A stretch of 64,000 bases of DNA, taken from the NCBI GenBank assembly GCA_010909165.1, contig VJWM01000107.1, forward strand, positions 310,001 through 374,000, read 5' to 3'. Positions 7,221 to 58,727 of the stretch are shown here, piece after piece; position 1 is the stretch's first letter, and each line of letters starts with the position of its first letter. The position numbers were made by a program, and so were the translations under genes. Source of the stretch: Anthoceros angustus (taxonomy: Eukaryota; Plantae; Anthocerotophyta). Under the pieces are notes generated by a model. The model worked only from the letters and a program-made list of their open reading frames with translations, searched no databases and was not told the DNA's origin.

Positions 7221-10200
7221 CACTACTAGGAAAAGTATACTTTTACTAATTGCAGTTTTACAACAGGGGTGCATTTTACCACGACTGCCCATTTTACTAC
7301 GTCAATTGAAGGCACCGTTTCAAGTCCATGTATTATTTTCAAGTATAGCCTCGAATTTACTAAACCTCATTCCAACTTTACTAGGCTTGTTTTGCCAAAG
7401 GCGCAACGGTGACGTGGCAAAAACAAAATGGATTTTACTACGGGCACTTGTTACTTACAATGTAGCTTATGGACGTTACAACGATGGCATGTTTGTTTAC
7501 TACGGGCCATCAATTTACTACGTGACTTTCTCCATTACAACGGGTTCTTTTACAACATGCCAATGGTATTTTACAACATCCCATAGTTTACTACACACCG
7601 TAGGGTTTTCAACAAGACCCTTTACGACTAGACACCGTCGTTTACAACAAAGACTAATTTAGAATGGGTTTTGATGATAACCCACATCTTTTACCCTAAA
7701 AGAAAAAAGTAGAGGTAACTGGGTGTACATCGATTCTGACTTGGGCTAGGCCGACCCTAAACGAGAACAAGCGGGACATGCTGAAAAATCCTCCATATGC
7801 ATCCACATCCCTATGCATCCATATTTTCTTCAAAGACAACGCTTTTCCACGTGGTCCCGACAACCACTTTATTGTCATACAAAAAGTTTGAATTAGTTTG
7901 GGTGACACAAGGGTAAAGGGATCATCTTGAACTCGTAGAAGGATAACAAGATCTAGGGTTCACTATGTGCATTCCAGAATTGTCCTTCTTCAATCCCTTG
8001 TTGTGATCATTTGCATCCTCATAAACTAGTTTGAACCACTTAACCTTTAAAAAATTTACAACCCAAAGTCAACCTTTAAAATTTTCTGCACTATTCCCAC
8101 ATATGGCCGAGGAGAAGTATGGCCGAGGATTAGGGTTTGGGTCAAATTAACCTTGGCCTTCGAAAATCGAGTTGAATATGTCGGATGAGGGTTAGGGTTT
8201 GGTTAAAGTAACCTTGGGCTTCGGATTCGCATGGAATATGCTAGCTTGAGGTCTAGGGTTCGGGTAAAGTCCTATTATCACCGATATCCAAGGAAGAAGA
8301 AGGCTATAAATGCAATGATAATGTGCTAATTCACCAAGCCATATCCAGGGTTTGAGCTCCATTCCCACCAGAGCAAAAACATCATGCAAAAACACGCACT
8401 GGCGAGTGCTGCGAAATTCCTGCTCAACCTAATGGCGGGAAGTCCTGACTATGAGTCATTTCCGCCGGCGTTTCACACCGCGGTCAAGGGAGAGACGCTG
8501 TACAAGTGTATGGAAAACCCTTCGTCTCGTATCATGACTCAGAGAGGCAAGCCCGCACCAGAATCGCTGACGCCAGCCATGGCCGCCACGCTAAACCCTG
8601 GAGATGGAGATGGAGGCAGCTAGTCGTCGAAGTCGCGCCAAGGAGAGTGCCTGCAGCTATCTTAGAAACTCAAGTGCTTTCGTTGTTCCAGCCAGATTTG
8701 GGCTCAAGGGTTGCAAGGATTGATGTTTCTGTGTCCCGCTGCAGTGCCAGGTGCGACTTACCCGACTCCAAGCTGCCTGGTGCAGGCAGCCCATCAACAA
8801 AGTCGTTCCCACGACTCCTAGAAACCTGCACGTGAGCAGATTTCATGTCACTTCGACGACTAACTGCGAGATCTGAGTGCGTCTGGGCTTAGAGCAGGTG
8901 GCTACGCACCCACAGCAAGGCACCACCTCCCCGCCTCACTAGCCGCAGCAGCGTTGCAGCCACAGCAACGCTGATCCAACAAGTTTGGGGTTTCCAACCT
9001 TCCAGGGGTCATAGCGCCCGCGTTACAGGTCGGTTGCCGTTGATTCTTATACCAAACTGCTCGCCTTGATGAGGCGAGTCTAATGGTATACTGTGTGTCC
9101 AATTTGGAGCCCTATCCAGGGACTGATTGCGTTTGAAAGTTTCGAACAGCAGGGTTTTGCTCTTGCTGCATTTGCTTTGATTTTCAATCTGGCATCGCGA
9201 GTGAGCGAGGCCGTGTGCTACAAGCTTTGCATGTGAGCTGGAGTTTTGCTGTGCTGTGTTTCTCAATCCTAGGGCAGACATAGGGGACCGAGGTGCTGCC
9301 GCATGATCAAAGCAGTTGAACTTTCTATTTTGTGCTAGGGAGGAGGGTGCCATGAAGAGGGTGAAGGATACAGGTAGCAATACCTACACATGCTTTGGCC
9401 ATGGGGGCAGCGTGGTTTTCTGGATAGGTTCAGAGGAAAGTTTGGGAGGGAGCCAACCGTGGATGAGATCAGAGCTGTTGGTATAGTTCACGGAAATTGG
9501 CTGGCGAAGCTGCGAGCGTTTTGGATGAATTCCAAAATCACAAGTCCTGCTTTGGGTCCACAGGTTAACTCACCGAGGGGGATTGACACTGCTATTAACG
9601 TGTGAAACCAGTTGGTTGAGGCAGGTTACCCAACCGATGAATGTGATACCCAATCATGGGGCTTGGCTTATAAAGTTGAAAGAGTTTTGGATGCAGTCTG
9701 GAACTAGAACTCCAGCTTTGGGTCTGCAAGTGGACTCAAAGGGGCAGAAGGACAAGGCGATTAATGTGTGGACCTTGTTGAAGGATGCAGGCTATTCCAT
9801 CAAGGAGTGCGATGAGAAGGTCATGGAGGCCATCCTAAAGCAGAATGTCATAGATGACGGTGGATGGTGGGGCATTATCTTCCCGCAAAGTTGCAAGACA
9901 AGCTGAGGATGCTTGAGCATGATTCTGGTTAGGTCGTTGTCCAGGACTATTGTGTCTATTTTGTGATAGCCTGAAGTTCTGTGAACTTGAACTGATTTAA
10001 GTTCGTGGTTCTCTTTTGCAGGTGGCAAACCTTTGGGGCACGGTCTTTGAGTTGAGGTGCTGGGTGGAGAAAATTCTTAGATGCCCGTGTAGCATGTAGG
10101 GGGCTGGGAGTCTAATATATTGTAGGATGTAGGTGCAATCCCGAATTCGGTACCCCATAACCCACACACCCGCCTAGCACTCCTTCATTTTACTACAACA

Positions 10201-37549: not shown

Positions 37550-40505
37550 TCAGCTAGAAGTTGTTGAAACCTGCTTGCCTAGTTCCAGCTGCCTGAATCT
37601 CCTACTCTCTTCATGGGCTATATCAAGGAGTTCTTGCAGTGTGTTTGACTTACGACTTCTTGATCGTCCGACAGCTCTTAACAGGTCCAAGAGCACAGCC
37701 CTCTCCTCTGCCAAGTCTGGATGCACAGTTCCCAGAGATTCTTCTTTCACCTGAAGAATGTACTCCAGCAATTTGATAGCCTCATCTGATCTGGAAGGAA
37801 GCACAAAACAGACAGACAGCTGGTCAGCCCACGATGAAGAGCATAGCGATATCTGCTGGTAAGGTATGGATAGTTCATGTTACATGAAAATGAGACAGAC
37901 CTGCCCAGGGCATCGTATGTGCCCGCCAGATTCGTGCATACTGCCAGAGTGTCAGAATGTTGAGGACCGCATGTTTCCTCCAGGATAGCCTTGGCCTCCT
38001 CGAAAATCTCAGCTGCATCATCGATCTCATACAGCTCCACACAAGCCAGACCCATCTGATTGAGCACAAGGCCAAGTAGGGGCTTCCTCCGTTCCCCACC
38101 CGTCCGTAGCTTAACAACAGCACTCTTGAAAGCATTCAGGGCCTCCACGTGTTTGCCTATATCGTAATACATCACCCCCATTTGCGCCAGAATACCTGCA
38201 GCAGCACTCTGCTGTCCAGGGGCAGTATCCAAAACGTGTAATGCTTTTTGAAGCAAATGCAAAGCCTGCTCCCGCTCATTGATAGCTTCATAGATTGCTC
38301 CCACCTCTGTTAGACCAGCTGCAATGTCATCTTGGCCAATACTGACTCCATTTTTGCCATATATCTTGAGAGCATTTTCACCATAACTCTTGGCTTCCCG
38401 CGATTTCCCTGTTTTCAAGTAAAGCTCTGCTAGGCTGACATAAACTGCAGCAATTGTGGGATCGCTTTCTCCTTTTATAGACTTGAGCACAGTCAGTGCC
38501 TTTTGATAGGAAGAAACTGCCTCGTCGTACCGTCCCAGCGCTAGGTATGTGTCACCTATTGTGTTGTCAACACTAGCAGCCTCTGCATCTTCACCACTAA
38601 CTAGCAGCGTGGCACTCGCCATCTCCAGATGCTCTAGGGCTTTCTCATAGTCGCCTTTCTCACTGCATATCAGCGCCATGAGCCTCCTATCAGCTGCCTG
38701 TTCCACAGAAGCTGGTGGATTGTCCGAGCCGTGTGTCCTCAGAACTTGTTCACACAGCTGTTCTGCTTCATCAAACTGCATAGCCTGCACAGCCAAGCTT
38801 TGCATGTCATCCTACACATTCAAGCATCATTCATACTAGCTTTGCAAAATGCATCACCCTCTGCCAGCCAGCCATCCAGCCAGACATGGAACAGCTGCAA
38901 TGCACCATGATTGAAAGTGAAAATGCAGGACTAGTGGAAGCACGACGTTACCTGCAAATGTGCTTCGGCCACATAGCGGCAAGTTTCCCCGAACCGAGGA
39001 TCTGAGTCGCCAAGTGCTTCCTTTTGCAGTCGCAAAGCTTCATGATATGCTTGCACTGCATCCTGATAGTTTCCAGTTAGCGCATAGGTGTCACCAAGCT
39101 GCATGTGCCCAGCAAACAGAGCCAAAGAGTGCTCCAACCCTTGCTCCAGATCAGGTACAGTGAGAGAGCGCTCCAAAACCGGAATGGCCTCCTCATACTC
39201 CCCCAGCCGGCAGTGCAGAGCTGCCAGAATGTGCAAGCTGAGAACCAAGTCCAGGCTTCCTTTCCCCTCGGCCTTGCTCTGGAAGTATTTGACAGCATAT
39301 CTGGCATACTCCCTGGCTTTCTGCGGACCTTCACCCGTGGCATGGTAAGATTTTGCAAGCCTGAGTAGGGTAGGACCGATGTTGGGCGAGTCCGGCGTTA
39401 GAGCATCATCCCCGTCCTTCATATACGCCTCTACTAGTGCGAGCTTCACCCTTGAGCTCTTTGTTGGCGACTCCGCTTCCGTCTTCGGTTCATCCTCACT
39501 TCCCGGACTGTTGCCAGCGCTCCCATTGCCTTTGGCGGAGAAGAGGCGAGTCTTGGGTGTCTTGGGAGTCCTGGGAGACAGGCCGCTCTTTTTGGTAGGA
39601 GACTGAATTCGCAGGCTGGTCTTCGGAGTGAGCTTCCCTGGACTGAGCTTGTTGGGAGTGGACGTGTGTGAAGTGGTCTTCTCCGGGGTGTTTTGCTGAG
39701 ACGATGCCTTGCTGCCTTTCGGCGAAGGCGTGGAAGCCTTGTCTCCTGGGCTCTGCTGAGCACCAACCTTGGCGAGACCGAGTCTGTGATTCACGACGCC
39801 CTTCTCTGAAGTTTTCTGATCAACCTGAGACGCGCTTTTGCTCGGATTCCTCTCCTGAGCATTCTTCTCCGGATCCCGGGGGCTAAGCTCCGACGCTGTT
39901 TTCCTTGAGGGCCTGCGAGAAGGAGTGGTGTCTACAGTAGCCGAGTCGGGAACAAGCCCATCGTTTGCAGCCTTGTCCAGTGTCCTCTTTCCCGATTCCG
40001 GGGTAAGCGGCCCTTTGTCTTGCGAGGACTTGGCCGAGGGGAGCTTGGGGGATTTCTTGTCTGGCGTCTTCTCCGCCAACCTCTTGGGTACGGACACATT
40101 GAGGCCCCTCGGCGAGCCCTTGCCGGGGGATTTCTTGGGAGTCCTGGGACCTGCCGGCTTGCCATTCTTGTCCGCAGCAACCGGCAATTGCACATTCACG
40201 TGTGCAGATTGCAATTCCTTGGCCTCCTCCACAACCGGAGGCCGCGCTTGCTGCTCCTTCGATCCATTCTCCAGCTCCCTCATAACAGCCACCTCCTCTA
40301 CCACCTCCTCTTCGTCCAGCAATGAGGCATCCTCCTCCGCAGACACAGGAGCATCCAACCCAACTTCAGCAGCACACCCATCGGACGGCAAAGACGCGGG
40401 ATCGGTGGATCGATCCAGCGAAGCGATGATGGGAGTGGATTCAGCAGAAGCAGATTTCTTGCCCTCCTGCTCCACCGGCGCTGGCGCGGGCTGCTCGATG
40501 GCCAT
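37550..40505 (-). CDS. KLCR: Kinesin light chain-related TPR protein (KLCR/CMU family), 3 exons, ~892 aa
   Basis: Exons 38952-40505, 37901-38784, 37550-37790 (2679 nt, in frame). Long S/P/K-rich disordered N-terminus, then tandem TPRs (DNPNIGP-like SPNIGPTLLRLAK, GHMQLGDTYA, GETCRYVAEAHLQAMQFDEA, EESLGTVHPD, RSRKSNTLQELL). Confidence 0.93.
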
Positions 40506-41022
40506 CGCAGGCCGCCTGGCGGCTATCGGTGCGGAAGCGAGCTGCAGGCAAGCAGGCAGATCCAAAAGCACGAGGAATTCAGCTCCAGTAAGGCGACAGC
40601 GAGAAAAGGACGGCAGACGATCCTCCACTCTCCCCATAAAAAATGTGAGCGGACACCACGAGACGGAGGCAGTGCGGCAGCAGCACAAGCCAGGCAGGCA
40701 GGCAGCATTCTCGACTCCACTCCACCAGGGGGAAGGTACGGGACGAATTGCTTACAAGTGTGGGAGATGTCAGAACATTGTAAACCCGACAAGCAAGCCC
40801 CCGGGGGTTGCGCAGATCAAGCTCGCATCCTCAAGGTGCATGGCCACATTCCGCGGAACAGCATTAAGGGTCGGGGATGCAGCGTCGGGTGCTGTGCAGA
40901 GTGCAGTGCCCAGTGCCCACTAGTCTTGACTCTTCCTTGCTCGCTAGAGGGAAAGGTGAGGGATGCAATCTGGGATTCCAGAAGCCTGGACAAATGCGCG
41001 CGAGTGCTCTGGTGGGGACCCA

Positions 41023-41890: not shown

Positions 41891-44800
41891 TCACCACGAA
41901 TGGGAGAACGGGAGGGACCTGTTGCGCTCTGACAAGACTTCCAACAGCTCGCAACAACGATGGGATGGCTCTTGTTCACGGGTAAGCGTTACTGTTGCAA
42001 CAGCCGGCCTACTGGGACTGTCCTCCTCTGCCCCCGACGCTGACCCACTCGCTACCCCTTGTGAAGAGTGCCGGGCTTGGACCAGGTGACGCCCCGAACT
42101 GGAGCTTCTGTCTGGAGCCGAGTATAGGACTGAATTCCACCGCCAACTTGGCTCTGGATTGTGAGCCACCAGCTTGGTTTGAGCTTTGCCCTCCCTGCCA
42201 CCGGCGTGCTGCTGGCGGCTGCTGCGTACATGCAAAGGGTGTTGTGACAAAACATGTGCTGCTCTCCCCTCAAGACGTAAGAGTCATGTGAGCCCCCTCA
42301 TTGTCTGCACCCTAATTGCCGTGCCTTCCGAGAGGGTACTGGGTACATACATACCTGCTGTAGCCCACTCGGTTGCAGAACAAGTTGAACAACCCACAGA
42401 CAAATCTGCTTGGTTTGGCAGAGCTCACATTCGTAGTAGTAGTAGGCAAGGGCAAGCAAGGGCTTGTGGGGAACCGGGGCCGAATTCCCTCGTTTGTTTC
42501 CAAGCATGGCATGGAGAAAGGATGTGACAAAGATACGTTGCCTGCAGCATTGGGAAACAGAGAGATGCCACAAGATAATATCGTCCGTGTGGCTACCTTT
42601 TCATGTGCCTACAGTTACATGCTGTAAAAGTATGATAAACTACGGTGGGCAATCGTCCCTGCCGGTGCACAAAGTTGTGAAATCTGTGGAAGGGCGAGGC
42701 AGGCAGCCTGGCTGCCAGCCTTTTCCGGTCCGGCTGCTGCTATCCTTGCCCGTGGTTTCAACTTTTACACCACCTACTATCGTTGCTTTTGGATGAATGT
42801 TTTGCTGCACGTCAGCGGCTAAACGAGAGATCTGAAGGAAGTTGGGAACTGGTGCCACCAACTCGGGCATGATGGTGGCAGCAGTCACTGGATAAAACAG
42901 AAGTTGACTACAGAACAGCAGTCCCCACACGGGGCCCTTTCTGCCTTGCTTGCAGGGTGTGCCGAGGATCCCCGAGGATGGCGTCACACTAATCTGCAAT
43001 GAGCCGGACCGCAGATCCGGCTCCAAATCACACTCAGGAGCGCCTGCTGGAGCTTTGGCTGGAACCTTGTCCTCTTCAGGCCTGGGGTGGGGAGGTGGCG
43101 TCGTCAGTCTGTACAGCCATTGACTGTTTCACGGTGCGATGGTAAGTCCTGTTGGCCCCAACTTACTCCTTCCACGGATGGGCATCAGAGATATTGTCAT
43201 CATGTCTTCCCCTTGGAGTCCTTGGAGGCAGCCAGCCATGCATGAGGTGTGTGTCGGCAGAAAGGGGAAGTTGCCCCACAAGTCAACAAAGCCCCAGCTG
43301 GAACTGGCATCCAAACTTCCCACCTGTCATCCACAATTCTGATAGCTTGTTGATGAGGCGCGCCGGCAACGAGGCCTGGCCGAAAACGCATATGAGGCTC
43401 GCTTCTAAAACGCATATGCTGTACCCATTTTCGTGGGCACTCGGGAGGGACCTGTGTCGTTGTCAGTGTGCGTATCGGATGGACGAGCTATGCAGCACCA
43501 TACAAGTGGAGAACCCGCGTGTGGGTCCAGCTGCACCTGATTCACAAGGAAATCACACCGAGCCTGGAAGGAAATCGCACCAGGCCTGGAAGGAAATCAC
43601 ACCAGGCCTGGAAGGAAATCACACCAGGCCTGGAAGGAAATCACACCAAGCCTGGAAGGAAATCACACCAAGCCTGGAAGGAAATCACACAAAGACTGGA
43701 AGGAAATCACACCAAGCCTGGAAGGAAATCACACCAAGCCTGGAAGGAAATCACACCAAGCCTGGAAGGAAACCACACCAAGCCTGGAAGGAAATCACAC
43801 CAAGACTGGAAGGAAATCACACCAAGCCTGGAAGGAAATCACACCAAGACTGGAAGGAAATCACACCAAGCCTGGAAGGAAATCACACCAAGGCTGGAAG
43901 TGAAGATGAGCATTAAATTCGTTGAGGCTGATTGTGCATGTTGAACTTGCTGAATCTGAAACGAGGGTGAATGTTGAACTTTGTTAGATGTGAACCTCGT
44001 TTCACATCCGTTGTGCTCACTAGCATCAGACGTTATCCACAACATGTACTACAGAGGGACATCCTGATATTGGGCTAGCTAGTGCATGCTTATTACTGAT
44101 CCCTTGCCATGCAACCTTGTGACGCTGAAGTAACTCACGCGTCGGTACGAATCATGACATTCTCGCGAAGAACTTGGCTTTCCCCAATTTCGATACTCCC
44201 CACCACCTTCTCAGTTGTTTGGAACACAGACCTCATGGCAATATCTGGACACCACCAATCGCCACCACGGGCTTCTTTTCCTGTTGCACACTGCTCACAG
44301 TCGGCGGGCACAGTCCAAAACGGCAGCTACCGCCCCACATCACAAGACTGGGTTTGGCAATGCCCTGCCAGGAGAGCATGATGCACGAGATCGTCCATCC
44401 AGGTTTGGGCATGCAACCAGCGTTCTATTCCTCTTATCACAAGCTTCGTGGATGCTAGCATGCATTTCCATGGTAAGCCACTTAGACCTTCTTCACGTCG
44501 GGTGGCACTTGTCATGCGGAAATCCTGTCTGCCATGACATCATGCCTAGTTGCAGATCCGCCATTGTAAACACATACAACACTGGCAAATGCACGGGTGC
44601 CAGTGCATTCCCAAACCCACGTCCTCATCACCTTCCATCCGAGTTGCGACGGGCCCATGCAAGGCAACGCAACAGACTGCAAGAAAATCTCTGAATCAGC
44701 ATCAAGAGCCTCAAGTGCAAAGCCACCACGGACAACCATATCTCGTCTTACCTGTCACAACCGCCAGCAGCCCCCTACGAAGACGAAGTCCTTCTCTCAA

Positions 44801-44970
44801 GCCAGGTCCTTGTCAAGCCTTATCACCCACACCAACACATCACAGACTCAAGGAGGTGCCCAGATGCCAGACAAGGTCGTCCATGCGCTGATCTGCGCTG
44901 ACTGCCGCTCCTTCCTGCTTCAGCTTGGAAGCATCCACGGCAATACGGTCTACCGCAGGATCCCCGCCCA
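41891..44970 (-). CDS. Putative multi-exon orphan gene of unknown function
   Basis: Six to seven consecutive AG/GT-bounded exons chain in consistent phase without stops: 43452-43530, 43324-43375, 43167-43220, ~42774-43108, 42355-42541, 41891-42221. Upstream open exon-like pieces lie at ~44136-44280, ~44370-44525 and ~44850-44970 but could not be joined with certainty. No recognised domain. Confidence 0.4.
43547..43898. repeat. 22-bp minisatellite, ~16 copies (AAGGAAATCACACCAAGCCTGG)
   Basis: Read directly. Near-identical contiguous units with no spacers; this produces the 22-aa periodic ORFs in the track. Confidence 0.97.
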
Positions 44971-45100
44971 TCGCAATAGACCTGCGCCACCACACCACAA
45001 TCTCAGCAAACACAACTCCAACACCAAAAACCCAAAAAAACCCACAAAGCCAAGAACAAACAACAATGTGGGCGAAGTTCCATTCTAACACACAATCACC

Positions 45101-46081
45101 CTACCGCTGAAACTTCCCGATAAACTCCTGCCAAGCCTCCCACCCGGCCTCGATCAAGAGCGCCGTGAAGTCACAAGGCGGCAACAACCCCAAAAATGTA
45201 TCAGGGCAGACACCAGCCCGGCAAGCCTGCACCGAACGCCGCAAAACCAGCTTCGACCTCTCCCCACCATCACAAAACGGCGTCACCGGAAACGGAGTGA
45301 GCGCCCACAACACAAACGCCACCAGCAACCTCGCCATCCTCCCATTCGCGGCCGGGAACGGGCACACGGTCACGAAATGCACATACATCAGCCCCGCCAC
45401 CTTATACAAATCCACCAACACATCCCCGGCCCCGGAATCGATCTCCTCCGCCACCACCCCCACCATCCCATTATACAAATCGCACAGCGCCTGCAACAAA
45501 CCCGGCACCAGCCCGTGCTCCGGGTGCGCCCCCTCCGGCTCCCCGGCCACAGGGCCGGTCCGCATCCGAGCCCCCTGGTCCCCGCCCAGCGTGCGGTGCA
45601 GCTCCAGCACCATGTCCGGCGTCACCGCCAGGGCCTCCCACTGCCGCTGCCCGGAACATCCCAGCCGCAGATCGTAGTGCGACTTCAGGGCACGCAAAGC
45701 CATGCCCAACCGGATCACCTCCCACTCCGCAGGCCCAGTCCCGTCGCCGCGCCCCAGCACCTCCCTGCTCCGCTCCACCGACTCCATGCCCGCGCCAGCC
45801 TCGTCCGCCGAGTTGCTGCTCACCACGAACCTGGCCACCGCGTCCGGCCAGTGGTTGTAATCCGCGAACGAAACCGCTGCCGGGCTGCGGGAGAACTTGG
45901 CCGTCCATACCGCCATGTCCTGCACCATCTGGGACGTGCTCGGCCCCCCATCCACCCTCCATTCCGGCATCTCCGTCGGCCTGAAATCCATGTGCGATCG
46001 ACACAACGCTGCCACCTCCATGCTCGCCTCGCCTGCCACTAACCTCCCTCCATAACGCCTTTCCGCGTTAAAGCAGCTCAT
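45101..46081 (-). CDS. Fic/Fido (Fic/Doc)-domain protein with non-canonical signature, single long exon; start codon uncertain
   Basis: 326-aa open frame, GC-rich. Fic-like architecture: TPDMVLELHRTL, RMRTGPV, HPEHGLVPGLLQALCDLYN, and HFVTVCPFPAANGRMARLLVAFVL aligning to HPFx(D/E)GNGRxxR. Confidence 0.8.
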   Translation of the reverse strand: MSCFNAERRYGGRLVAGEASMEVAALCRSHMDFRPTEMPEWRVDGGPSTSQMVQDMAVWTAKFSRSPAAVSFADYNHWPDAVARFVVSSNSADEAGAGMESVERSREVLGRGDGTGPAEWEVIRLGMALRALKSHYDLRLGCSGQRQWEALAVTPDMVLELHRTLGGDQGARMRTGPVAGEPEGAHPEHGLVPGLLQALCDLYNGMVGVVAEEIDSGAGDVLVDLYKVAGLMYVHFVTVCPFPAANGRMARLLVAFVLWALTPFPVTPFCDGGERSKLVLRRSVQACRAGVCPDTFLGLLPPCDFTALLIEAGWEAWQEFIGKFQR

Positions 46082-46842
46082 CGCGCTTAACAAGGGCCAT
46101 CCATCCACGCATACAGTCAAGTAAGTGGCAGGCGAAGAGACATCTCTCCTTCCTCTCCAGGTGCATCATCTGCGTATCCCGGTGTTCCCTCCTTGCTCAC
46201 GACCCAGCTTGAGCCGGAATGGGAGAATTGGGGCAGGATGGTGGAGGATCCGGCTCGCTCTACCGCTGAATCGTGGAGTTTCCGGGAGATGGATTCGAGC
46301 TCTCATGTTGCCGCGGTTAGGCTCGTATCCCTCCTTGAGGATACCCGGTGCTGTGATTACATGCGTACTGTAAGTGTGAGAATGAAGGGAACCAAATAAA
46401 ATAATAAACGACATAAGATATGGTTGTACAGCATATAATTGTATACGTACAAATCCGCGTACGTATACGGATTGGTATGCGCGTGCATTGGCGGCAGCGC
46501 CCCGGGGAGTGAACGAGTCAAAAGCGCGGGATGATGTAGAGGCCATGTTGGGACGGGGTGCTGCAACCTTCCTTTTGAAGCCTCTGGCGCGGATTGCCGG
46601 AAGTGTGGAAGGGGAGAGAACATTCGACTCTCTCACCAAAAGCAGGATCGGAATCGACCAGGGACCAGGCCTGGATGCAGGCGCGGGCGACGGAGGGAAC
46701 CCGGATGCTGCCTCTGGCGTACGCGGCTGCGGCCTGGAGCTGAGATCATCTTTGCCGCGCGGCGTTGGTGATGGAGGATGCGGCGATCTAGCTGAGCGGG
46801 GGTATCGGGAGCTGGAGCTGGAGCTGAAGGAGTCTGGCAGCC

Positions 46843-49800
46843 ATGTCGGGGAGATTAGTGGAGCTGGAGTATGACCATCCCCGGCGGGTGCGGGCGCGAG
46901 CCCACTGGGACATCCTGGTGGAGAAGAAGCTGCGAGCGTTCAGTGCGCAGACCAGGCAGAGCAGCAGCGAGTGGAAGCAGCCGATAGGCCTCGCGGCCGA
47001 GCTCCCGTCGACCATCGGGAATGCGCGCGTCGACACCGTGCTGGTTGTCGCAGACCGACTGCGGCGGTACAGTCAGCAGGTGGCTCGGATCTGTAAGTGG
47101 ATTGCGTGTGCCGCTGCTGTGGTGGATGGATTTTAGACTGGGGCCGGGGATGGAAGCCGGCCGCAGCCTGGCTTAGTGTTGTTCTGCATGTTTTGCAGTG
47201 TGTGAGTATGCTTACAGGCTCGCGCAGGAGCTGGATCCCAACAGCCAGCGCCGGGGGATGCTGCAGTTCAAGACGGGGCTCTTGTCCATCATCACGGTAC
47301 TCTTGGGAGGCTGTGGAGGCTGTCTGCTTCTGTTTGCGGGGGGACGTCCAACTGACCATGGTGAATCGGCTCTTCTGGCAGCAAAAGAAGTCCAAGAAAG
47401 AGGGGCAATCCATTGACCGCAGGCAGGATGCTATTCTCATAGCGGATTTCTATAAGGCCTACAGGAAGAAGATTGACAAGCTCGAAGCTGAGGAGGAGCA
47501 GTGGCATGAACGCTCTAATCAAGGGGACGGGGCTCCTGCAGCGTTGGTTCCTGGCCTGCTTTCTTTGCGGACATCGTGACTTGAAATTTTCAGCCCGTCC
47601 ATGCCGTTCTGCTTGTATAACAGTTTCTGGCAGATATGCAGTGTGCCAGTCGGGCCACCTGCTCCGCTTGCACCTGTTGCGACTCACTGGATTTCTATAT
47701 GTGAGCAGGGAATCGAAAAAAAGAGTTGCCAAGATTAAGGATGGGTATCAAACGTTCAGAGTTCTGAATGAGGTGCTGGATGCCCTCATCCCCAATAGGG
47801 AGGAGAAGAAAGCGCTCCTTGACGAGCAACAGGTATCTTTGCTGCTGCTGAGCATTCAGGTCTGTGCAATGCTCTGTGCTTGTTCCAGAACAGTTGAGGT
47901 CTATCTCGCTTCATATTTTCTTCTTGGGGTCGCTGGTCACAAATACCTTGTCCCAGGGAGAAGGTCAGGAGAGGATAGACATAGAGAGCGATGCAGCTAA
48001 AGCTTCAGAGTACAAGCCATACAATATTCTGCCTTTGGAGACACCAAATGCGACTCATCTCTTTGAATTCCTGCCTCAGGTGATTTGACTTCTGCCAATT
48101 TCTGCTCACCTTGGCCGAGCATGTTGTGATGCTCATTGTAGCAGGAAAACGAAGCCTGCTTGTGAAAACAAGGGACTCCGTTTTTGCAGGTTAAAGGAGC
48201 TCAGTCTGCGCTGTATCTGGAGGATGGGGATCGGGATCGGCGTTGGGATCGGCAGCAGGATCGTTTGCCTGCACTTCCACGCACTGTTCCCCGTCCCAAT
48301 CAACGGTCTGAAGATATGCTGGATCTTCTGCAGTATATTTTTGGTTTCCAGGTACCTTCGGATCCCACAGCGTGCTGTTTGCATCCATGCTGTTGTATCT
48401 CGTTTGCTGACTTGGTAAAGCATTTAGAATGTAGGTTGTCTTGTAGGTTACTCATGAGCATGACCCGTAACTGCTCCATTCTGCTTCTTGACAGAAAGAC
48501 AATGTGAATAACCAGCGGGAACATCTCATACTCTTGCTTGCCAACACTCATGCTCGTGTTTCACATCCGGATGGTGGGGTGAGCCTGCTACATTCTCCTT
48601 TATTTTTCGAAAATTATTCTTGTCTGCAGCACACAACTCCAACTAGGAGACTTTTCAAGGCCTTGCCGAGACAGTAACTCACTAACTTTGGACATTGGTA
48701 CCCTCTCACTGATGCCTGTCTCTGTGATCGAGCAGGCAAATGATCTTGCAGTTCACCGTTTGCATGATAAGGTCTTACAGAACTACCAGAAATGGTGCAC
48801 CTATTTGAGGAAGGAATCTGCATGCAGAAGGTATGTTGTGAAAAATAATTTTTCCTCTTTATGGGAGTTGCAGACAGGCCTGGGCTACATGAATATGCTA
48901 CCACTAGTGAGTTGTATTCTCAGCCTGGAGGGCTGTCTTCTCCTTTTCAACCTCAACAAATCAGCTAAGGATCTCTGATTCCTGCATGGGAAGGATGATG
49001 GATACTCATCTAATCATGTGCTGCTTCTGGGATGATGCAGGGGGAATTCTGTGCAGGTCAAGCTCCTTTTGACGGCCCTTTACTTACTGATATGGGGTGA
49101 AGCAGGAAATATTCGATTCCTACCTGAGTGTCTCTGTTACATATTTCACAATGTAAGGAATGGCCACAATTTCTTTGGTGCCAAATCTCATGAACTGAGG
49201 AACATCCACAGGCTTTGACACAATGGTTGAGGTGGGGCTTTTCCAGATGGCTTTTGAGCTGCTCCAGCAGTTAGATAACACTGTAGCAGTTCATGCGAGC
49301 GGAGTTGGTGATGGAGATCACGAGTTTCTTGACCAAGTTATAAAGCCTTTATATGGCGTAGTTGCTGCAGTAAGTAACTTTATACTATTTTCTGAAGTGG
49401 TTTTGGTTTCAGTGCGACACTTTTCAGGCATGTGCAGTGCTAAGGTGTGGCCAATGTTTGTTTATGAGTTGATGGATTGTCTCCCAGGAAGCTAAGTATG
49501 GGAAGGGCAAGAGCCACACAGAATGGAGGAATTATGATGATCTCAATGAGTATTTCTGGTTGGTGTACACATGCGTTTGGGCCCATAAGCATTGAAATAT
49601 CATTGACTTCTTACATTCCTGGTTCCTTACGTTCTCCGATAGTTGAAGAACTTGCTTTTAAAGTAATGCACTGACTGTCTGACTCATCATCTCTTGCTAG
49701 GTCGGATCACTGCTTTTCACTTGGATGGCCAATGTCATTGAATAACCCTTTTTTTACGAAGCCTTCCGAAGTATGATGCTGCAGCTCTGTTGTGATGGTG

Positions 49801-52800
49801 TAATATTGTGACTGCCCGATCTGTCATATGAACAGCTCGTTTGTCTGCTGGATTTTCTAGTTTTATGTGTATTGTACTTCTCGCTTGCAGGAATCTGGTT
49901 GGAGGTGGGGTGGACAGAGGGGAAGGATGGGTAAAACTTTGTTTGTGGAGCACAGGACCGGACTTCACATCTATCATAGCTTCCACCGGCTTTGGATTTT
50001 CTTCCTAATCATGTTGCAGGTAGGTCTTAGGTGAATCATTTACGCTGCAACTGTTGTCACAGCTGGTGCTGTGTGCTCATACAAGTCATCATTGCAGATC
50101 TTAGCGTTAATTGCTTTTACCAGCAAGCTTCATGGTTGGCACCGAGCCAGACTAATTTTGAGCTGTGGGCCAACATACTTGTCATTGAAGCTCATTCAGT
50201 GTATGTATGTGAGGTGTTGTTCTGGCGGCTTCCTTAAAATCTTCTGTAGTTTAATGTATGAGTCCTGGTCAGAGTGCACTGTTGGATCTACCTGTTGGTT
50301 CCTGGTTGGGCTCATTGAATTCTTTCTGAAAATTTATGTTGCAGCTGTTCTTGATGTGCTTCTGATGTTTGGAGCGTACAAGAGCACTCGAGGTCAAAAT
50401 GTGGCAAGGGTGTGTGTGCGATTTCTTTGGTTTCTGGCGTTATCAACTGCCATCATATTTGTCTATGTGTATGTATTCCAGTTCACTACTTACGTGCCCT
50501 TCTTTACATTGTACTTAATTTGGATTTACTGTCTTCCGTGTTTTTGAGAAAATGTTGGTTTCTTACTGTGATGGGTCATTCTTCTGTTGCCAGGAAGGTG
50601 ATGAGTGAAGCGAATCTCAACAAGACCTCGGCACTTTTCAATATCTACATCCTTATCATTGGAGTGTATACTGCTGAAGTGGTGGCTGTTGAGTTCATCT
50701 CCCGCATCTCAGCACTTCGCCTTCAAGTAGACAAAATTGAGACCTGGGGCATCATACGCTTCATCAGCTGGGTTCATCAGGTGGTCCTTAGAAAATGCCG
50801 CCCTCTTATTCTACTGGAGTTGAAAGCTTGTCTGGAGGATACTGAGCATCTTAGGAGTAGAGATTTTTTTGAGAGCTGACAGCATTTGGTGCAGGAACGA
50901 TTCTATGTTGGAAGAGGCATGTACGAGACAACCAAGGATTTTATCATGTATGTCTTTGTTGTCAGCCAATGGTTTCCTGGCGATGTTGTTACAAATTTGT
51001 TAACAACTTCCTTCTTGCTAACATTAGATTCACTCTGGAACAGCTATGCTGGATTCTGGTTTGTCATATTGGCTGCCAAGTTTTCCTTCAGCTATTTCTT
51101 CCAGGTATATGTTTTGCTTAGCTGACAGTGTTTCACTTTTGTGCGGGAAGGGTTCTACCCCATGAATGTTCAACCAAAACGTAACCTGAATGTTCAACCA
51201 GATTAAACCTTTGGTGAATCCGACTAAGGTCATATATGACAAAAGGATTCTAGAATACAACTGGTACTCCTTCATCTCAAAAAGTAAGCAAATCCTGACT
51301 TTCTGGATGTTGTGTATGTTGTGTGATCAGCTCTTGTAGGTTCTTGTTTCTGAAAAAGTAAGAACCTCCTGACTTCAGAGTCAGGGGTTGTTGTTGATTC
51401 TGAGACCAATAGCTCTACTCTGCCCTTTTCTTGTCCTGCAGATAACCACAATACGTGGACTTTGGTATCACTGTGGGGACCAGTTGTTCTGGTATGACCT
51501 TTTCAGCTCTCTTGGAACTGCTTCTTTCAGGCCGTTTGATTAAAATATCTTTTCATTCTATCTATTGCGTTCAGGTTGATCTCACCACTTCGAAGTGCGT
51601 TGACTGTTTCTGGTGCAGATCTACTTTCTAGACACACAAGTGTGGTACACTGTTTTCTCAGCCATTTGGGGTGGTGTTGATGGAGCAATCATGCATCTTG
51701 GAGAGGTGTGTGTCAGCTTCTCTTCTTACAAGTTCTACATTAGGCGTCTCTTTTACCTGCTGTGATCGATCTCTTGTGATTTGTGAGTTCCAATCACCCT
51801 GTGAGTGGTCTGCATCTGTCTCTTCAGATCCGTTCACTCAATATGCTCCGCAATCGGTTTCGCTCTTTCCCTGAGGAATTTGTCAAAAAATTAGTTCCTG
51901 CTGCAATAAGGACACAGATGTGAGACACTGAAGACTGTAGAGCTCATTTTGTCTCCTCTATGAAAGTGTGGACGCTTCTGTTTATTTCTTTGACTTTGCA
52001 AGACCTGATATTGAACTAGTGAAAGTGGTTTGATGATCATGCAGAACTTCAGGTGCACAGGTAACTTCAAGAGTGGTGCATATTTCACTTGCTTGCAAAT
52101 GCTTTTGCGCAAAACAAAGAATTTAGTGATGGTTCTCATGATGGACTAGGGAGTTTGGTTATCTGCATGCCGAGACCCAAAGTGATTTGGAACATATTGT
52201 GCTGCTAGGAGTCACCCATCCTTTCTCTCCTGCCAATTCCCTTATAGGTCATGAATAGATGGTGTAGTAGTTATTTGGGAGTATGAGTCATTCTCTGCTC
52301 CTTAATCTGCCGGTTGTGTCGCATCAATTTGCACAGAGTGGGAGATCCGATGCTCAGAGGTTTGCTCCCATCTGGAACGAGATCATCAGGAACCTCCGAG
52401 ATGAGGACTACATAAGCAACAGGTGAAAGTTTGCCACCTCTACTGACTCTCATCGTTCTCTTCCAAGGGCTTTAACATCCCTGCTTCAGACGAGTAGTGT
52501 ATTGTGTGTTAGATCATTTTGTGATAAAATGCTGTCATGTCTGTGTCTTCCCTCCTACTTGTCTATGTAGGGAGAGAGACCTGCTCTTGATGCCCAAGAA
52601 TATTGGGAGCTTGCAAGAGGTGCAGTGGCCCTTATTTCTCCTCGCCAACAAGGTGAGCACCACCATCACCAGATTGAATTTCTCATCTACGCATATGGGT
52701 CCTTGAAATTGGAATTTTCATGCAGATTGCACTGGCGAGCAATCTGAGTGGTGAGCATAGAGGTTCACAACAAGAGCTTGAAAGGGAAATATCACATGAC

Positions 52801-55800
52801 CAGTACATGTTAGCTGCGGTGAGCGAAGCTTATGCAAGTGTACGGCAAATGCTGCAGAGATTGGTGCAAGATCCCGTTGAGCAAACCTGGTGCAGTACTT
52901 CTTTTCCTAAAACTTATTTTGGAAGAGCAATTGGATGCAAAACTATTAGCATACGTTCAAGGTAGTTTGGCAAGGCTATGTAGTGGTAAGCTGCTGCACC
53001 ATGGAGCTCAGGCTTTTTCCACGTTGTATGGGCAGGGTGCTGAATGTATTTCAACTGATTGACGAAGCCAAGGCAAATTCAGCTCTGGTTGGTGATCTTA
53101 ATTTGAAGAAACTTGGCGGTCCAGATGGGCTTGTTTCAAGATTGGGAGTCCTGACAAAGAATCTGATGGATCTGGAGGGCATTTCAGTCCGTATTGCCAA
53201 CCTTTTGACCTTAGTCTTTATGTTGCATAATGGTGAGGCAGCTGGTGGTTAATTTGATTTTGGTTACTCTAGGATGAAGATATACCCAGGAAGCACAATG
53301 AGATCACAAAGACGCTCGCGAAAATCTTTGAGAATGTTATGCAGGATGTGTTCGGACATCAGCTCAGGTGGTGTTCAATCTTTCTTTAAGCTACAGTCCT
53401 TTTCCATGGTGGGTCCTTTGGGTTGTGTCTTATCACCGCGTTCTGTATCCATTCCAGAGAGAAATTTCTCAGCTCTGATATTATGAGGAGAGCTAGGGAG
53501 GAACCAGAGCTGCTGTTCTCAAATATCAACTGGCTGTCAACGCCTGAAAAGGTTGGACAAAACTGATTCTGTACATAATCAAGCTCTTTTGGCTGATTGT
53601 GGGGTTTGATGGCAGCATGAAGAGATGGTAAGGCTCTATCTACTATTGAGTATCAAGGTTTCTGCTTCGAGTGTACCAAGGAATGATGAAGCTCGGCGGC
53701 GCCTCGAGTTCTTCTCCAACTCTCTTTTCATGGACATGCCTGCAACACCATCACTCCAAAAGATGTTCTCGTTTAGTGTACTGACTCCTTACTATGAAGA
53801 AGACGTAATGTTCAGCTATGCTGCACTGAACAAGCCTAATGAAGATGGCATCACAATACTTTTCTACCTTCAAAAGATATTTCCAGGTAACGAACTGCAT
53901 CCTTTTATGTAGGGCCCACATATGCAGTTTCAACTGAGCATGTCCTGATGTTCCTCCATTCGAACCCAGAAAGCCCTAGTCGTGGGTGAGGTTACTTGTA
54001 ATGTGCAATAACTTTGGTTTTGGTTGTCTGTGTAGATGAGTGGAATAATTACTTGGAGAGGGTGTTCCCCAAGCAGTCGCTGAAACATGCTGATCGGGAG
54101 AAATATTTTGCGGATCATGTAAACTTGCACAGGAAGAACTCAAGGGACACGAGGGAAAAAGTGGACACTCATGATGAAGGCCCAATTCTGCAGCTCCGCC
54201 TCTGGGCTTCCTACAGAGGCCAAACATTGGCACGAACTGGTATAGATGAGGCATATCTTAACAAATTCCTTTATCCACTGTCTGCTTGTGTATCCTTGTT
54301 TGGACCTGAGGTACAGTTCAGTGTTGCACTCACCTTGCTATCTGTCCGCAGTGCGTGGGATGATGTATTACAGGAGTGCTTTAATGCTCTTGAGTCAACT
54401 CGAAGATGCACCAGCTCGAGGTACCTAGCTTTTATCACAAGTCTGATGAGTTGTTATCAATCTTATCAGCTTTTGAAACTGTTGCGGGGTGCTACAGATG
54501 AAGAGGCTGGAATTAGGCCAGCCTTGGGAACCATGCCCCCTTCACTTAGAGCACAGTCTGTGGCAGACATGAAGTTTTCATATGTTGTGAGTTGCCAGAT
54601 TTATGGGTCGTTGAAGAAAAGTTCAGACCCTGCTAAGCTGCAGAAAGCTGCTGACATTGGCTATCTTCTGAGATCGTAAGTAGGATAGTGCCATTCTGTT
54701 GTTGTTTCATATCTAGCATATTTGGAACAGTGTCCAGTATTCTCTTGCTACTTTGCTACTGTTTGTGTGAATGATGTTGTGTATATGGATCCTTTTAGCT
54801 CTGATATGCTGAGCAATTTGATGACCTTTACCTTGTGCGCAGCCACGAGGGATTGAGAGTGGCCTACATCCATTCTGAAGAGAAAACAGTTGATAATAGA
54901 CCGACCAAGATGTTCTTCTCAAAGCTGGTTAAAGCAGATGCTGTAGGGGAGCAGGTATAAGTCGGTTCAACCATGTCAAGCTATTTTCGGGGCATTTGGA
55001 GAACAAGGTGTTTCTGACCTCTACCAAGGTTCGTTTGCCAGGAGATCTATTCAATCAAACTGCCAGGAGACCCACTGCTTGGAGAAGGGAAACCTGAAAA
55101 TCAGAATCATGCCATTGTATTTACAAGAGGAGATGCTATACAAACGATTGATATGAACCAGGTAACGTAGACATGTTCATGGAGGTTGATGTTTTGCTCT
55201 ATTGTAGCAGGTCAATGGATGTGTGGCATGTTATTTTGCAGGATAATTATTTTGAAGAGACTGTGAAGATGAGGAATCTTCTACAGGAGTTTGATGTGCA
55301 GCATGGGTTACGTAAACCATCAATTCTGGGTGTCCGTGAGCATGTATTTACTGGAAGGTTAGTGTCTCTTGCTTCATGTCGATGCTGTATGACTGTCATG
55401 CCGGCCTATTGGTTGTTCAAGCAGGTCTCTCTGCACATGACTGAGTGGGCTCCTCATCTTCATTGCTGGCAACAGCGTCTTTGCCAGCTGCCTGACGATG
55501 TCCAGCTGTTTCCAGTGTCTCTTCGCTCGGATGGTTTATGTCTAATCAAGAAACAAGTTTTGTGACTTTAGGGCAGAGAGTGTTGGCCAAACCTCTGAGG
55601 TGAGCTCACAGCTTTAGGTGAGGTTGGAATGCGAAGTTGAAAGAAGGAAAAGGCTAACTGAATTTTCCTGGTGCAGAGTACGGATGCATTACGGTCATCC
55701 AGATGTATTTGACAGGATATTCCATATCAGCAGAGGTGGAATAAGCAAAGCGTCAAAAGTCATCAATATAAGTGAAGATATCTATGCAGGTGCTCACATA

Positions 55801-58583
55801 ATTATCGAGTTGGATGTTGACCAGTTTCAAATTCAGAGGCACATTATTTTACCTGTATGTCGATTTTTAAAATTTGCAGTTTTTAATTTGTAGGCTTCAA
55901 TTCCACTTTAAGGCAGGGTAATGTGACACATCACGAGTACATCCAGGTCAGTGGCTAGTGGCTTCCGAACTTGGAGCAACAGCATTTTCAAACTTTGTGT
56001 GCCGAAAAGATTTCTCACCTTTTAATGTTGCAGGTTGGCAAGGGACGTGATGTGGGGTTGAATCAGATTGCAATTTTTGAGGGGAAGGTTGCAGGCGGAA
56101 ATGGTGAACAAGTCCTGAGCAGAGATATCTATCGCCTGGGCCAGCTTTTTGACCCCTTTAGAATGTTGTCGTTCTTCTATACTTCTGTTGGGTTTTACAT
56201 TTGTACTATGGTGATTCTACGATACCCTCCATGATTTTAAGTCTATCTTGTTTGTGCTTGAGAGAAGCACATTTAGGGGAAGGGCCTGACTTTTGAAAAT
56301 TAATTGTCATGTCAGATGACCGTTCTTACTGTTTATGTTTTCCTCTATGGCAAAGTATACCTGGTGAGCTGCTGCTTTTCTCTTGTTTGGAAGGGTAGGA
56401 CCTCACTTTTGCATTATTCTTTCACGCTTTTTTCAATATGTTTGGTTAAATTTGTGTCAGGCATTGTCTGGAGTGGAAACTAGTCTTTCAGAAGAGGAAA
56501 CCAACAATAAAGCTCTACAGACTGCCCTTAATACGCAGTTTCTGTTCCAAATTGGTGTCTTCACTGCCGTTCCGATGATCATGGGCACCATTCTTGAGCT
56601 GGGTGTCTTGAAAGTACTTGCTGCATTCCCCATGCTACCCTTGACACAGTATGTCGAACTTATTAGCAACTTTCGTTGCTTACATTCTGTGGCTGTGGCT
56701 TTTGGCAGGCTTTTACCGGTTTTGTGACAATGCAGCTTCAAGCTGCATCTGTGTTTTTCACTTTCTCTCTGGGAACCAGAACCCACTACTTTGGCAGAAC
56801 TATTCTTCATGGAGGTGCCAAGGCATGAACTTCTTGCCTTTACTAGTGGTTGCTATGCAAGTCCTTGAATTTCACAATTGTCGTTCGAGTGTTTGCTTTG
56901 TCAAAAATCGAATTGGATCACTGCAGTATCGAAGCACTGGAAGAGGATTTGTTGTGCAGCATATCTCATTTGTTGAAAACTACAGATTGTTTTCCCGTAG
57001 TCACTTTGTCAAAGGGTATGTCCTGCTGAATGAGTTGTTTCAGTAACTCGGGTCATGATTGCTTTGCTCTCATGTTGCATAAACAGTCTTATGCCTTCTA
57101 CTGACGTGGTACCTGGATTTGCCAGGCTGGAGGTTGCACTCCTCTTGATAGTGTATGCTGCATACGGCTCTAGTAAAGGAACCGTTAGCTACATACTCCT
57201 CACATTCAGCAGTTGGTTCCTTGCCCTTTCCTGGCTTTACGCACCCTTCCTCTTCAACCCATCTGGATTCGAGTGGCAAAAGTAAGATTCAGTTGTTGTT
57301 GAACTGAGTCAGTAGCTGTTGTCCTTTTTCTTGTGGCTGAGGACTGACATGTGCGGTCGACTGTTGTGCAGAGCGGTGGAGGACTTTGACAACTGGAGCA
57401 ATTGGATCTTCTACAAAGGCGGCGTAGGGGTTAGCGCTAATGAAAGCTGGGAAGCATGGTGGGAAGATGAGATTGTGAGTTGGTGTCTAAGAGACCCATT
57501 TCTTGTATTTCTTTCCTTGTATGTTTGGATCGGATGATTCCTGCTATTCTCGTGTAACTCCGCGGACATGTCTACCAGTCGCACATCACGACATTCCTAG
57601 GTCGAGTTTTGGAGATCATCTTAAGCTTGCGTTTCCTCATCTTTCAATACGGTGTAGTGTATTCATTGAACGTAACAGGAACTGATAATAAACTCAATGT
57701 AAGTTCTTGTTTTAACTGCAAGGGAACTTGAGGGTTTATGTTAATTTAGCGGCTGTCTTCTTACGAGAATGGTGGCTGTAGGTGTACGGGATATCCTGGT
57801 TGGCATTGGCTGGTCTGCTGGTGCTGTTTAAGGTATGTGTTTGCTCCTTCTTTTGCGTCATCAGGTGTATCTCTATGAGTCTGACTTAGTTGTAGTTGTG
57901 GGGGTTGAGCTGTTAACACCTCTTCTCTTGTCGTGTGATTCTGAAGGGCTTTACGATCAGCCAGAGAGCAGCGGCTAGATACCAATTGCTTCTTCGGTTT
58001 GCCCAAGCCCTTGTATTCGTTGGCGCCCTGATCACGCTAGTTTTGCTTATTGCTTTAACACCCCTTACCCTCTCCGACGTATTTGCTGCCTCTCTTGCGG
58101 TTCTTCCAACGGGGTGGGCTGTTTTGTCGGTGAGTTTGTGTTCCGTGGCTACGCTTTCACAGATTTTGTTGTTTTTAGCGTAAGGAAATAGACATTTTGC
58201 GTAGGTGATAGTTAATCCATTATGTTTCTTTACAGATGTGCGTGGCAATCAAGCCAGTGGTTAAACGATTGGGTTTGTGGAAGACGGTACGGTCTTTGGC
58301 ACGGTCTTATGACGCGTTATTCGGGATGTTGATATTTGTGCCGATTGCAGTTCTATCGTGGTTCCCATTTGTTTCCACCTTCCAAACCCGTCTGGTGTTC
58401 AACCAAGCCTTCAGCCGCGGTCTTGAGATATCCCTTATTCTAAGTGGGAAGCAGGAGGAAGAATCGGAGCAGAGGAGGGAACGAGTTGTCTGCCAAGGGT
58501 GTCAGCCAGAGATAGTTGGGCAGAATAGGGTAGTTTGCTTCAAGTGCAAGAATGTGTTGGGGCAAGGCAAGAAGGAAGATTGA
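46843..58583 (+). CDS. CALS: Callose synthase (1,3-beta-glucan synthase, GT48), GSL8/GSL10-like clade, multi-exon
   Basis: Ordered exon peptides LCEYAYRLAQELDPNS..LQFKTGL, LLIWGEAGNIRFLPECLCYIFH, EARRRLEFFSNSLFMDMP, FSVLTPYYEEDV, LRLWASYRGQTLART, GEGKPENQNHAIVFTRG, LGVREHVFTG, RMHYGHPDVFDR, GKGRDVGLNQI, NPSGFEWQK and QTRLVFNQAFSRGLEIS. Not every exon boundary was resolved. Confidence 0.96.
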
Positions 58584-58727
58584 CACGGCTGGGCGACTCA
58601 TTATTTTTTTGCGTAGTACTTCGACTCATTACTTTATACGTAACACCTAATTTTCTGAGCTCATATTGTGATGGGTGTTATCTGTGATATGGGATCCCGG
58701 AGTCTCAACTTGGTAAGTAGGAGAGAG

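Follow-up and report, generated by a model that had tools for sequence, protein, structure and literature searches.

A transcribed and spliced plant gene encoding a Fic/Fido-fold protein with a degenerate catalytic loop, a candidate pseudoenzyme

The window analysed here is a stretch of 64,000 nucleotides of the hornwort Anthoceros angustus assembly GCA_010909165.1 (contig VJWM01000107.1, positions 310,001 to 374,000; coordinates below are those of the window), and its minus strand carries a gene for a stand-alone Fic/Fido-fold protein whose catalytic loop departs from the canonical signature. An earlier note, made from the letters alone, had placed the gene in an angiosperm setting, whereas the host is probably a hornwort. 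It had also given the gene a span of 45101-46081 without introns. An uninterrupted minus-strand open reading frame (ORF) of 339 codons does cover 45101-46120, with its first ATG at 46081, and the frame is intact and GC-rich as described: the coding sequence has 65% GC and 81% GC at third codon positions (GC3), compared with 47-62% GC3 in neighbouring ORFs and 46% GC in the intron. The orthologous protein P0001 (347 aa), however, extends beyond the stop of this ORF, and its tail aligns with window sequence further downstream, which predicted a 123-nt intron and a second coding exon. On the minus strand, coding exon 1 (45105-46021) is defined by the ORF, the Pfam Fic match and the coverage by spliced contigs; it is followed by intron 1 (44982-45104, 123 nt, GT..AG) and by coding exon 2 (44840-44981, coding 44981-44843), which encodes a 46-residue C-terminal tail ending in ..LGTSLSL, a terminus common to the window protein and P0001. 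The TAG at 45101-45103 thus falls within intron 1, and the coding sequence runs on to a TGA stop at 44840-44842. A further GT..AG intron of 75 nt lies in the 3' untranslated region (3'UTR) at 44677-44751, as read from a joint in a transcript contig and from its splice sites.

Alignment of Logan contigs to the locus confirmed the predicted intron 1. A 2263-nt transcript contig from organism A (X1, record 1) covers 44300-46323 of the minus strand plus about 437 nt further below 44300, and skips both the 123-nt intron, exactly, and the 75-nt intron in the 3'UTR. Contigs from organism B (runs X11 and X18), which are 90-95% identical to the window, skip the same 123-nt intron, and the X2 DNA contig, colinear with the window, retains it. 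Since spliced contigs are found in both organisms, the gene is not intronless; it is transcribed and spliced in two species. Furthermore, the lineage of P0001 and P0152 carries a 90-nt intron at the identical junction, between ..QR and S.. (genomic contig L005/P0152 compared with cDNA contig L001), showing that the intron was in place before the two lineages separated. Translation probably starts at the ATG at 46021 (352 aa) or at that at 45991 (342 aa), because the conserved N-terminus begins there: ten codons upstream of the MDF start of P0001 are conserved ('ASMEVAALCRSHMDF' in the window, after ATG 46021, and 'ASMDWAALCRVHMDF' in the orthologue), and the in-frame ATG further upstream, at 46081 (372 aa), shows no conservation. 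No additional 5' coding exon is present in the transcript contig and an in-frame stop precedes the ORF, so the product is a Fic domain protein of the stand-alone type. Between 46323 and 46022 on the minus strand, the 5' leader contains about seven upstream ATGs opening short upstream ORFs (uORFs), and the 3'UTR intron starts 88 nt downstream of the stop codon. A uORF-rich leader and an intron in the 3'UTR are typical of transcripts under nonsense-mediated decay (NMD) or translational control.

The Fic gene is surrounded in the window by a multi-exon glucan (callose) synthase gene and tetratricopeptide repeat (TPR) genes, at least 23 runs from 9 studies among those listed contain at least part of the stretch, and an intron-split gene for a plastid-type sigma factor is present on the orthologue's contig. 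These observations fit a nuclear gene resident in the plant better than they fit contamination. The orthologue's contig, with its plastid sigma factor and ankyrin genes, shows no synteny with the window. A mobile element as carrier was considered and rejected, as the 64-kb window contains neither a second copy of the gene nor flanking terminal repeats.

The locus encodes a Fic/Fido-fold protein, which bears out the identity first proposed for it. Pfam Fic (PF02661) matches residues 153-258 with E = 2e-6 and 29 bits, above the gathering score of 24, and is the only domain found by Pfam; NCBIfam gave sub-threshold hints alone. AlphaFold2, given 79 aligned relatives, produced an all-helical model with eleven helices, a pLDDT (predicted local distance difference test) of 94.3 and a pTM (predicted template modelling score) of 0.93. 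Compared with the PDB by Foldseek, this model matched 43 chains at E <= 1e-3; those listed are all Fic proteins, with template modelling (TM) scores of 0.6-0.74. The top matches were BT_2513 of Bacteroides thetaiotaomicron (3CUC; TM 0.74 by target), C. elegans Fic-1 and human FICD (TM ~0.64 by query), and a profile of the relatives aligned over nearly the full length with BT_2513 (1e-21) and with FICD (2e-20).

BT_2513, whose function is unknown, is the best match among solved structures in both sequence and structure, and its alignment to the window protein extends over nearly the whole length, the SNHLEGN motif included; it differs in being bacterial, in its canonical HPFEDGNGR motif and in sharing only 19% identity. 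FICD/HYPE and C. elegans Fic-1, class II enzymes that AMPylate and deAMPylate BiP, share 16-20% identity with the window protein (16-18% for FICD). The FICD architecture of a transmembrane anchor, TPR repeats and a Fic domain is not found in the window protein, which has no transmembrane or TPR region, and the equivalents of FICD His363, Asp367 and Glu234 are all replaced; the protein is not an FICD orthologue. Nor does it carry the Doc toxin motif HxFx(D/N)(A/G)NKR, as the His is missing and the residue before the Arg is Gly, not Lys; no Doc structures are among the best structural matches. It does belong to a stand-alone eukaryotic Fic subfamily of the type found in Apatococcus, Mastigamoeba and Asterias, to which profile matches span positions 1-305 (E = 2e-53 to P0002 and 1e-46 to P0003). 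These proteins have the same architecture and length as the window protein and share with it an N-terminal FxPTExPxWR, the SN..E.G position, TPFPVT and LIEAGWxxW. They have the canonical HPFxDGNGRxxR and Tyr156, whereas the window protein and its orthologue have lost the His, the Asp and Tyr156 and carry an altered flap. No experimentally characterised member of the subfamily was found in the literature or the database names searched.

The signature loop CPFPAANGRMAR (C-P-F-P-A-A-N-G-R-M-A-R; 45329-45364, minus strand), to be compared with the canonical HPFx[D/E]GNGRxxR, reads as the earlier note had it: Cys (TGC, 45362-45364; Cys210) stands in for the His, and Ala takes the place of both the Asp and the first Gly. 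The Pro, the Phe, the Asn, the second Gly and both Arg are kept. The motif of a catalytically competent Fic AMP transferase, with its catalytic His, is therefore not present. At the position of the inhibitory helix, (S/T)xxxE(G/N), family and profile alignments place the sequence SNSADE (45800-45817, minus strand), part of FVVSSNSADEAG at 45794-45829. It aligns to 'SNHLEG' in BT_2513 and to 'TVAIEG' in FICD, which contains the inhibitory Glu234, so that the Asp at the Glu position, also read in the earlier note, holds up. In the window protein Asp thus replaces the inhibitory Glu, and Glu replaces the following G/N, leaving no class II motif proper; Glu occupies the inhibitory position in 91% of family sequences and is retained in P0001. 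By alignment, the family as a whole is class-II-like, because a conserved S-N-x-x-E-G block aligns to the FICD inhibitory helix. Two further elements depart from the family. The target-binding flap region, DQGARMRTG (45554-45580, minus strand), is altered in a way common to P0001, with either one extra residue between the Gly and Arg-Thr or a replacement of the Gly; this is read by alignment, and two alignments differ on the gap. Residue 156 is His (45524-45526, minus strand), as it is in P0001, and is Tyr in 96% of the family.

The orthologue P0001/P0152 is 52-55% identical to the window protein and also lacks the catalytic His, yet its loop is not the same. Position 210 is Cys in the window protein and Lys (codon AAA) in P0001; position Asp214 is Ala in the former and Val in the latter; and of the loop glycines, the first is replaced by Ala in the window protein and the second by Ser in P0001. 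Kept in both are Pro211, Phe212, Asn216, Arg218 and Arg221, together with a set of structural and subfamily blocks (D171, N174, PF, N-x-R..R, TPFPVT and LIEAGWxxW). The change from His to Cys (CAY to TGC) and that from His to Lys (CAY to AAA) each take two substitutions and end in different residues. The presence of different residues at position 210 suggests that the ancestral constraint was released before or around the split, with no common new catalytic residue fixed. A catalytic loop that appears to have decayed differently in each lineage, with the rest of the protein conserved, fits a pseudoenzyme rather than an enzyme with a conserved Cys nucleophile.

To collect relatives, a profile was made from the window protein plus its single orthologue and run with HMMER, exhaustively, over 1.84 billion representatives; 299 proteins reached E <= 1e-3, six of them E <= 1e-30. 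Among the best 150 of the 299, the motif could be recognised in 131, and 129 of these have the catalytic His within a canonical HPFxDGNGRxxR; the exceptions are P0001 (Lys) and one 59-residue fragment. Outside the hornwort-type pair, the more distant P0090 (401 aa, from an ENA metagenome) has Leu at the catalytic His position (LPFKEGNGRMAQ), indicating that the His was lost more than once in the subfamily. A word-index protein search with the window protein returned P0001 as its sole match, such searches being nearly blind here, and one with a clade-specific C-terminal block of the algal protein described below returned that protein itself and P0005 only. A scan of metagenome contigs with both His-less proteins gave no matches. 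P0151, a member of the 90% cluster of P0001, was set aside as a clustering artefact, being an unrelated bacterial NfeD fragment.

In the tree, P0001 and the window protein group together with 100% support, on a long stem branch of 1.05 substitutions per site. The pair adjoins the Apatococcus group (Shimodaira-Hasegawa-like approximate likelihood ratio test, SH-aLRT, 93) and is nested in a 10-member clade of canonical proteins (SH-aLRT 97), whose other members come from metagenomic or eukaryote-like contigs. The Apatococcus group contains P0004, which is KAK9844657.1, a 'Fido domain-containing protein' of the trebouxiophyte green alga Apatococcus lobatus. The wider family includes EP00727_P014767 of Mastigamoeba balamuthi, XP_033641541.1 of the starfish Asterias rubens and Atlas clusters dominated by Ascomycota and Mollusca; P0003 is carried by assembly GCA_030012885.1. 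The gene of the closest canonical relative, P0002, lies at 8001-8897 on metagenome contigs L002 and L003, one of them 3.1 Mb long, flanked by Bro-N and KilA-N genes and by short ORFs without family matches, a region that could be a viral insertion in a eukaryotic genome. A route through giant viruses, considered in view of this setting, found no support, as a scan of viral contigs gave one weak match of 27%.

Horizontal acquisition had been raised in the earlier note. The tree places the pair in a eukaryotic clade by Apatococcus and a close bacterial donor was not found: across 185,579 species, the best prokaryotic matches have 24-35% identity over part of the core, and a recent bacterial origin is unlikely. 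Because the nearest relatives are eukaryotic and the prokaryotic and viral matches weak, we assign the gene, from sequence comparison, to a patchily distributed eukaryotic Fic subfamily. It may be an old gene of the green lineage that was lost from nearly all other land plants, or it may have passed from an alga to a hornwort, an origin that the high GC3 fits, if weakly.

Several lines of evidence suggest that the gene is being maintained. The comparison with organism B covers the differences listed, with those at piece ends and the region beyond 45332 lying outside the listing. Seven of these differences are synonymous and one is non-synonymous in codons 220-296 of the Fic domain; for the C-terminal tail the counts are 2 and 5, respectively. 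Two indels in the coding sequence of organism B, of 6 nt and 3 nt, are in-frame. Against the P0001 cDNA, the approximate Nei-Gojobori ratio of non-synonymous to synonymous substitution rates (dN/dS, or omega) had an overall value of 0.17, with 0.12 for the core and 0.41 for the tail, the tail thus evolving faster than the Fic domain. At least three genomes or transcriptomes preserve an unbroken frame. Taken together, the conserved splicing, the in-frame indels, the synonymous excess, the low dN/dS and the conserved intron position argue against decay, and the gene is held by purifying selection. The earlier note had allowed for a decaying pseudogene among orthologues that keep the His; what we find is a gene expressed in two species and constrained, with an orthologue that is also without the His. 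The check that it proposed, on conservation of the Cys and on dN/dS, had a divided outcome: the Cys is not conserved, being Lys in the orthologue, while constraint on the protein is evident (dN/dS 0.12-0.17). The long stem branch would fit faster change after the loss of catalysis, followed by renewed constraint.

To our knowledge, and in line with reviews of the family (PMC12409994, PMC8401265), every Fic enzyme studied so far uses the motif His as its catalytic base and the acidic residue to hold the Mg ion. In FICD, His363 is required for both AMPylation and deAMPylation and Glu234 for deAMPylation, and in canonical Fic enzymes the flap and Tyr156 position target and nucleotide. Since the His, the Asp, Tyr156 and the flap are all changed and each lineage has lost one loop Gly, AMP transfer by the window protein appears most unlikely. 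A nucleotide-binding mode shared by both lineages is likewise doubtful on present sequence comparisons, because in Bep8 the triphosphate is reportedly kept from binding by a side chain at the position of the second Gly (PMC8401265). We therefore lean, with somewhat better than even confidence, towards a Fic-fold pseudoenzyme that acts non-catalytically by binding a partner protein, a role favoured because the scaffold and several lineage-specific surfaces are conserved. Under this proposal, a two-exon nuclear plant gene would encode a stand-alone, class-II-type Fic/Fido-fold protein of ~342-352 residues without a transmembrane or TPR part, descended from a eukaryotic subfamily of canonical Fic enzymes with the motif HPFxDGNGRxxR. 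The catalytic His, the Mg-binding Asp and other active-site features would have been lost, so that AMP transfer or removal would most likely be impossible, given the established need for the motif His. Purifying selection would then have retained the scaffold, which may bind a partner protein as a regulator, adaptor or decoy, by analogy with Bartonella BepC. The earlier note had named a pseudoenzyme among its options, and this is now the best reading, as the residue losses differ between lineages under purifying selection.

The FIC domain of BepC has a non-canonical motif and exerts a non-catalytic effect, binding and relocalising GEF-H1 independently of the motif (PMC7842960). The two proteins are not related beyond their fold: BepC is an effector secreted by bacteria, has OB and BID domains as well, and keeps its catalytic His, its motif departing from the canonical one only by Lys at the acidic position. 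AvrB, an effector of Pseudomonas syringae, has in common with the window protein a Fido fold without the canonical catalytic motif. It lacks the whole motif, whereas the window protein keeps P-F..N-G-R..R, and the best structural matches of the window protein are canonical Fic structures, not AvrB.

A number of points weigh against a non-catalytic binding protein. The confidence of the AlphaFold2 model owes part to the alignment of the canonical family. The count of synonymous and non-synonymous changes in the domain is built on eight listed differences, and as these reach 45332, the Cys codon at 45362-45364 lies outside the comparison with organism B; dS to P0001 is saturated (>2), which makes omega approximate. 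The phosphate-loop residues N216, G217, R218 and R221 are retained, and ligand binding or an unusual reaction is thus possible on the sequence. Finally, AvrB was long considered an inactive Fido protein and later turned out to be a rhamnosyltransferase (PMC10866546).

The retained residues are the starting point for a ligand-sensing or 'reader' pseudoenzyme, whose function would rely on the pocket and not on a separate protein-binding surface: the Asn-Gly-Arg...Arg anion hole would bind a nucleotide, a phosphate metabolite, or an AMPylated or phosphorylated side chain. Across the family, N216, R218 and R221 vary little if at all; the two His-less proteins retain them along with P211 and F212, and degenerate FIC pockets have been proposed in the Bartonella literature to bind AMPylated targets (PMC8401265). 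Yet each lineage has lost one loop Gly, the first becoming Ala in the window protein and the second, where in Bep8 a side chain reportedly blocks triphosphate binding (PMC8401265), becoming Ser in P0001, and the Mg-binding acid is missing in both. The pocket has therefore not been conserved as a unit, and we regard such a sensor as unlikely. A neofunctionalised enzyme, using the Cys as nucleophile with a thiol-linked intermediate or carrying out glycosyl transfer as AvrB does, seems less probable again. The change from His to Cys takes two substitutions in a frame under purifying selection, a Fido fold without the motif can be an enzyme, as the rhamnosyltransferase AvrB shows (PMC10866546), and Doc and AnkX work with variant motifs (PMC8401265). 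A selected catalytic residue would, however, be expected in both orthologues, and the sole orthologue has Lys (AAA) at the Cys position and three more loop differences, which weakens the proposal of a Cys nucleophile made in the earlier note; the flap and Tyr156 are altered as well.

There is also the prospect that the gene is an expressed relic, transcribed, without function and heading for decay, possibly left behind by a horizontal transfer long ago. Such a fate would fit the missing catalytic residues, the fast-evolving C-terminal tail and the fact that, in the databases searched, almost no other land plant has the gene family; it would also fit the abundance of uORFs in the leader and the 3'UTR intron lying 88 nt past the stop, which are expected to cut protein output via NMD. 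On the other hand, the frame has stayed intact in at least three genomes or transcriptomes despite dS-saturating divergence, omega is ~0.12 in the domain, the listed sister-species differences comprise 7 synonymous against 1 non-synonymous change, the indels are in-frame only, and the intron position and splice sites are conserved. We consequently give the relic little credence, the least among the readings weighed here, and retain a partner-binding pseudoenzyme as the preferred one.

A 2025 review places eukaryotic FIC proteins in metazoans and describes them as absent from plants and fungi (PMC12409994). An intron-bearing, expressed, resident Fic-fold gene in a land plant contradicts the statement 'absent from plants' in that review. 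Neither Fic nor Fido comes up in the main text of the hornwort genome paper or of the bryophyte pangenome paper, and a literature search returned no paper pairing 'Fic domain' with 'hornwort'. Degenerate Fic domains as such are known already, from the Beps and AvrB; new are the plant Fic pseudoenzyme, if our reading of it holds, and the uncharacterised stand-alone subfamily, which is scattered over eukaryotes in a green alga, an amoebozoan, an echinoderm and fungal and mollusc clusters. The plant copies offer a natural experiment in pseudoenzyme evolution, in which the loss of His and Asp is common, the replacements differ and the scaffold is constrained. A binding partner, if found, would reveal the role of a Fic scaffold after the loss of catalysis, and could hint at the targets of the canonical algal and protist enzymes. 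For hornwort biology, the gene adds one more lineage-restricted gene of non-bacterial affinity to the unusual acquisitions or retentions. The boldest proposal is that a land-plant lineage has turned a Fic AMP transferase into something new: either an unconventional or thiol-based enzyme of the Anthoceros-type lineage, in which Cys210 occupies the site of the former catalytic base and the phosphate-binding Asn-Gly-Arg..Arg is kept, or a dedicated reader of nucleotidylated or phosphorylated proteins. We think this improbable; were it true, plants would have their first described functional signalling component of Fic descent, accompanied by an unrecognised, widely scattered eukaryotic Fic subfamily distinct from FICD.

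Several further features lie near the Fic gene. About 4 kb downstream of it and on the same strand, two adjoining ORFs of 352 and 585 codons (37747-40688, minus strand) are rich in TPR_12 and TPR_10 repeats of the kinesin-light-chain / NPHP3 type; in the longer, 585-codon ORF, Pfam matches nothing in the first 430 residues. In metazoan FICD, TPR repeats are fused to the Fic domain, so the adjacency may be noteworthy, and it may equally be a coincidence. At or just past the 3' end of the Fic transcript contig, a 22-nt unit (consensus AAGGAAATCACACCAAGCCTGG, 95% matches) is repeated in tandem about 16 times at 43546-43900, and this array overlaps a plus-strand ORF of 254 codons (43152-43916) without a family match. 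The callose synthase gene mentioned above is multi-exon and occupies 48000-58600 on the plus strand, its exon ORF at 54014-54676 matching Pfam Glucan_synthase with E = 5e-9. Finally, a separate X1 contig of 2643 nt, which covers 46549-46700 and beyond in the opposite strand sense, begins about 230 nt upstream of the 5' end of the Fic transcript, showing that another transcribed gene lies close by.

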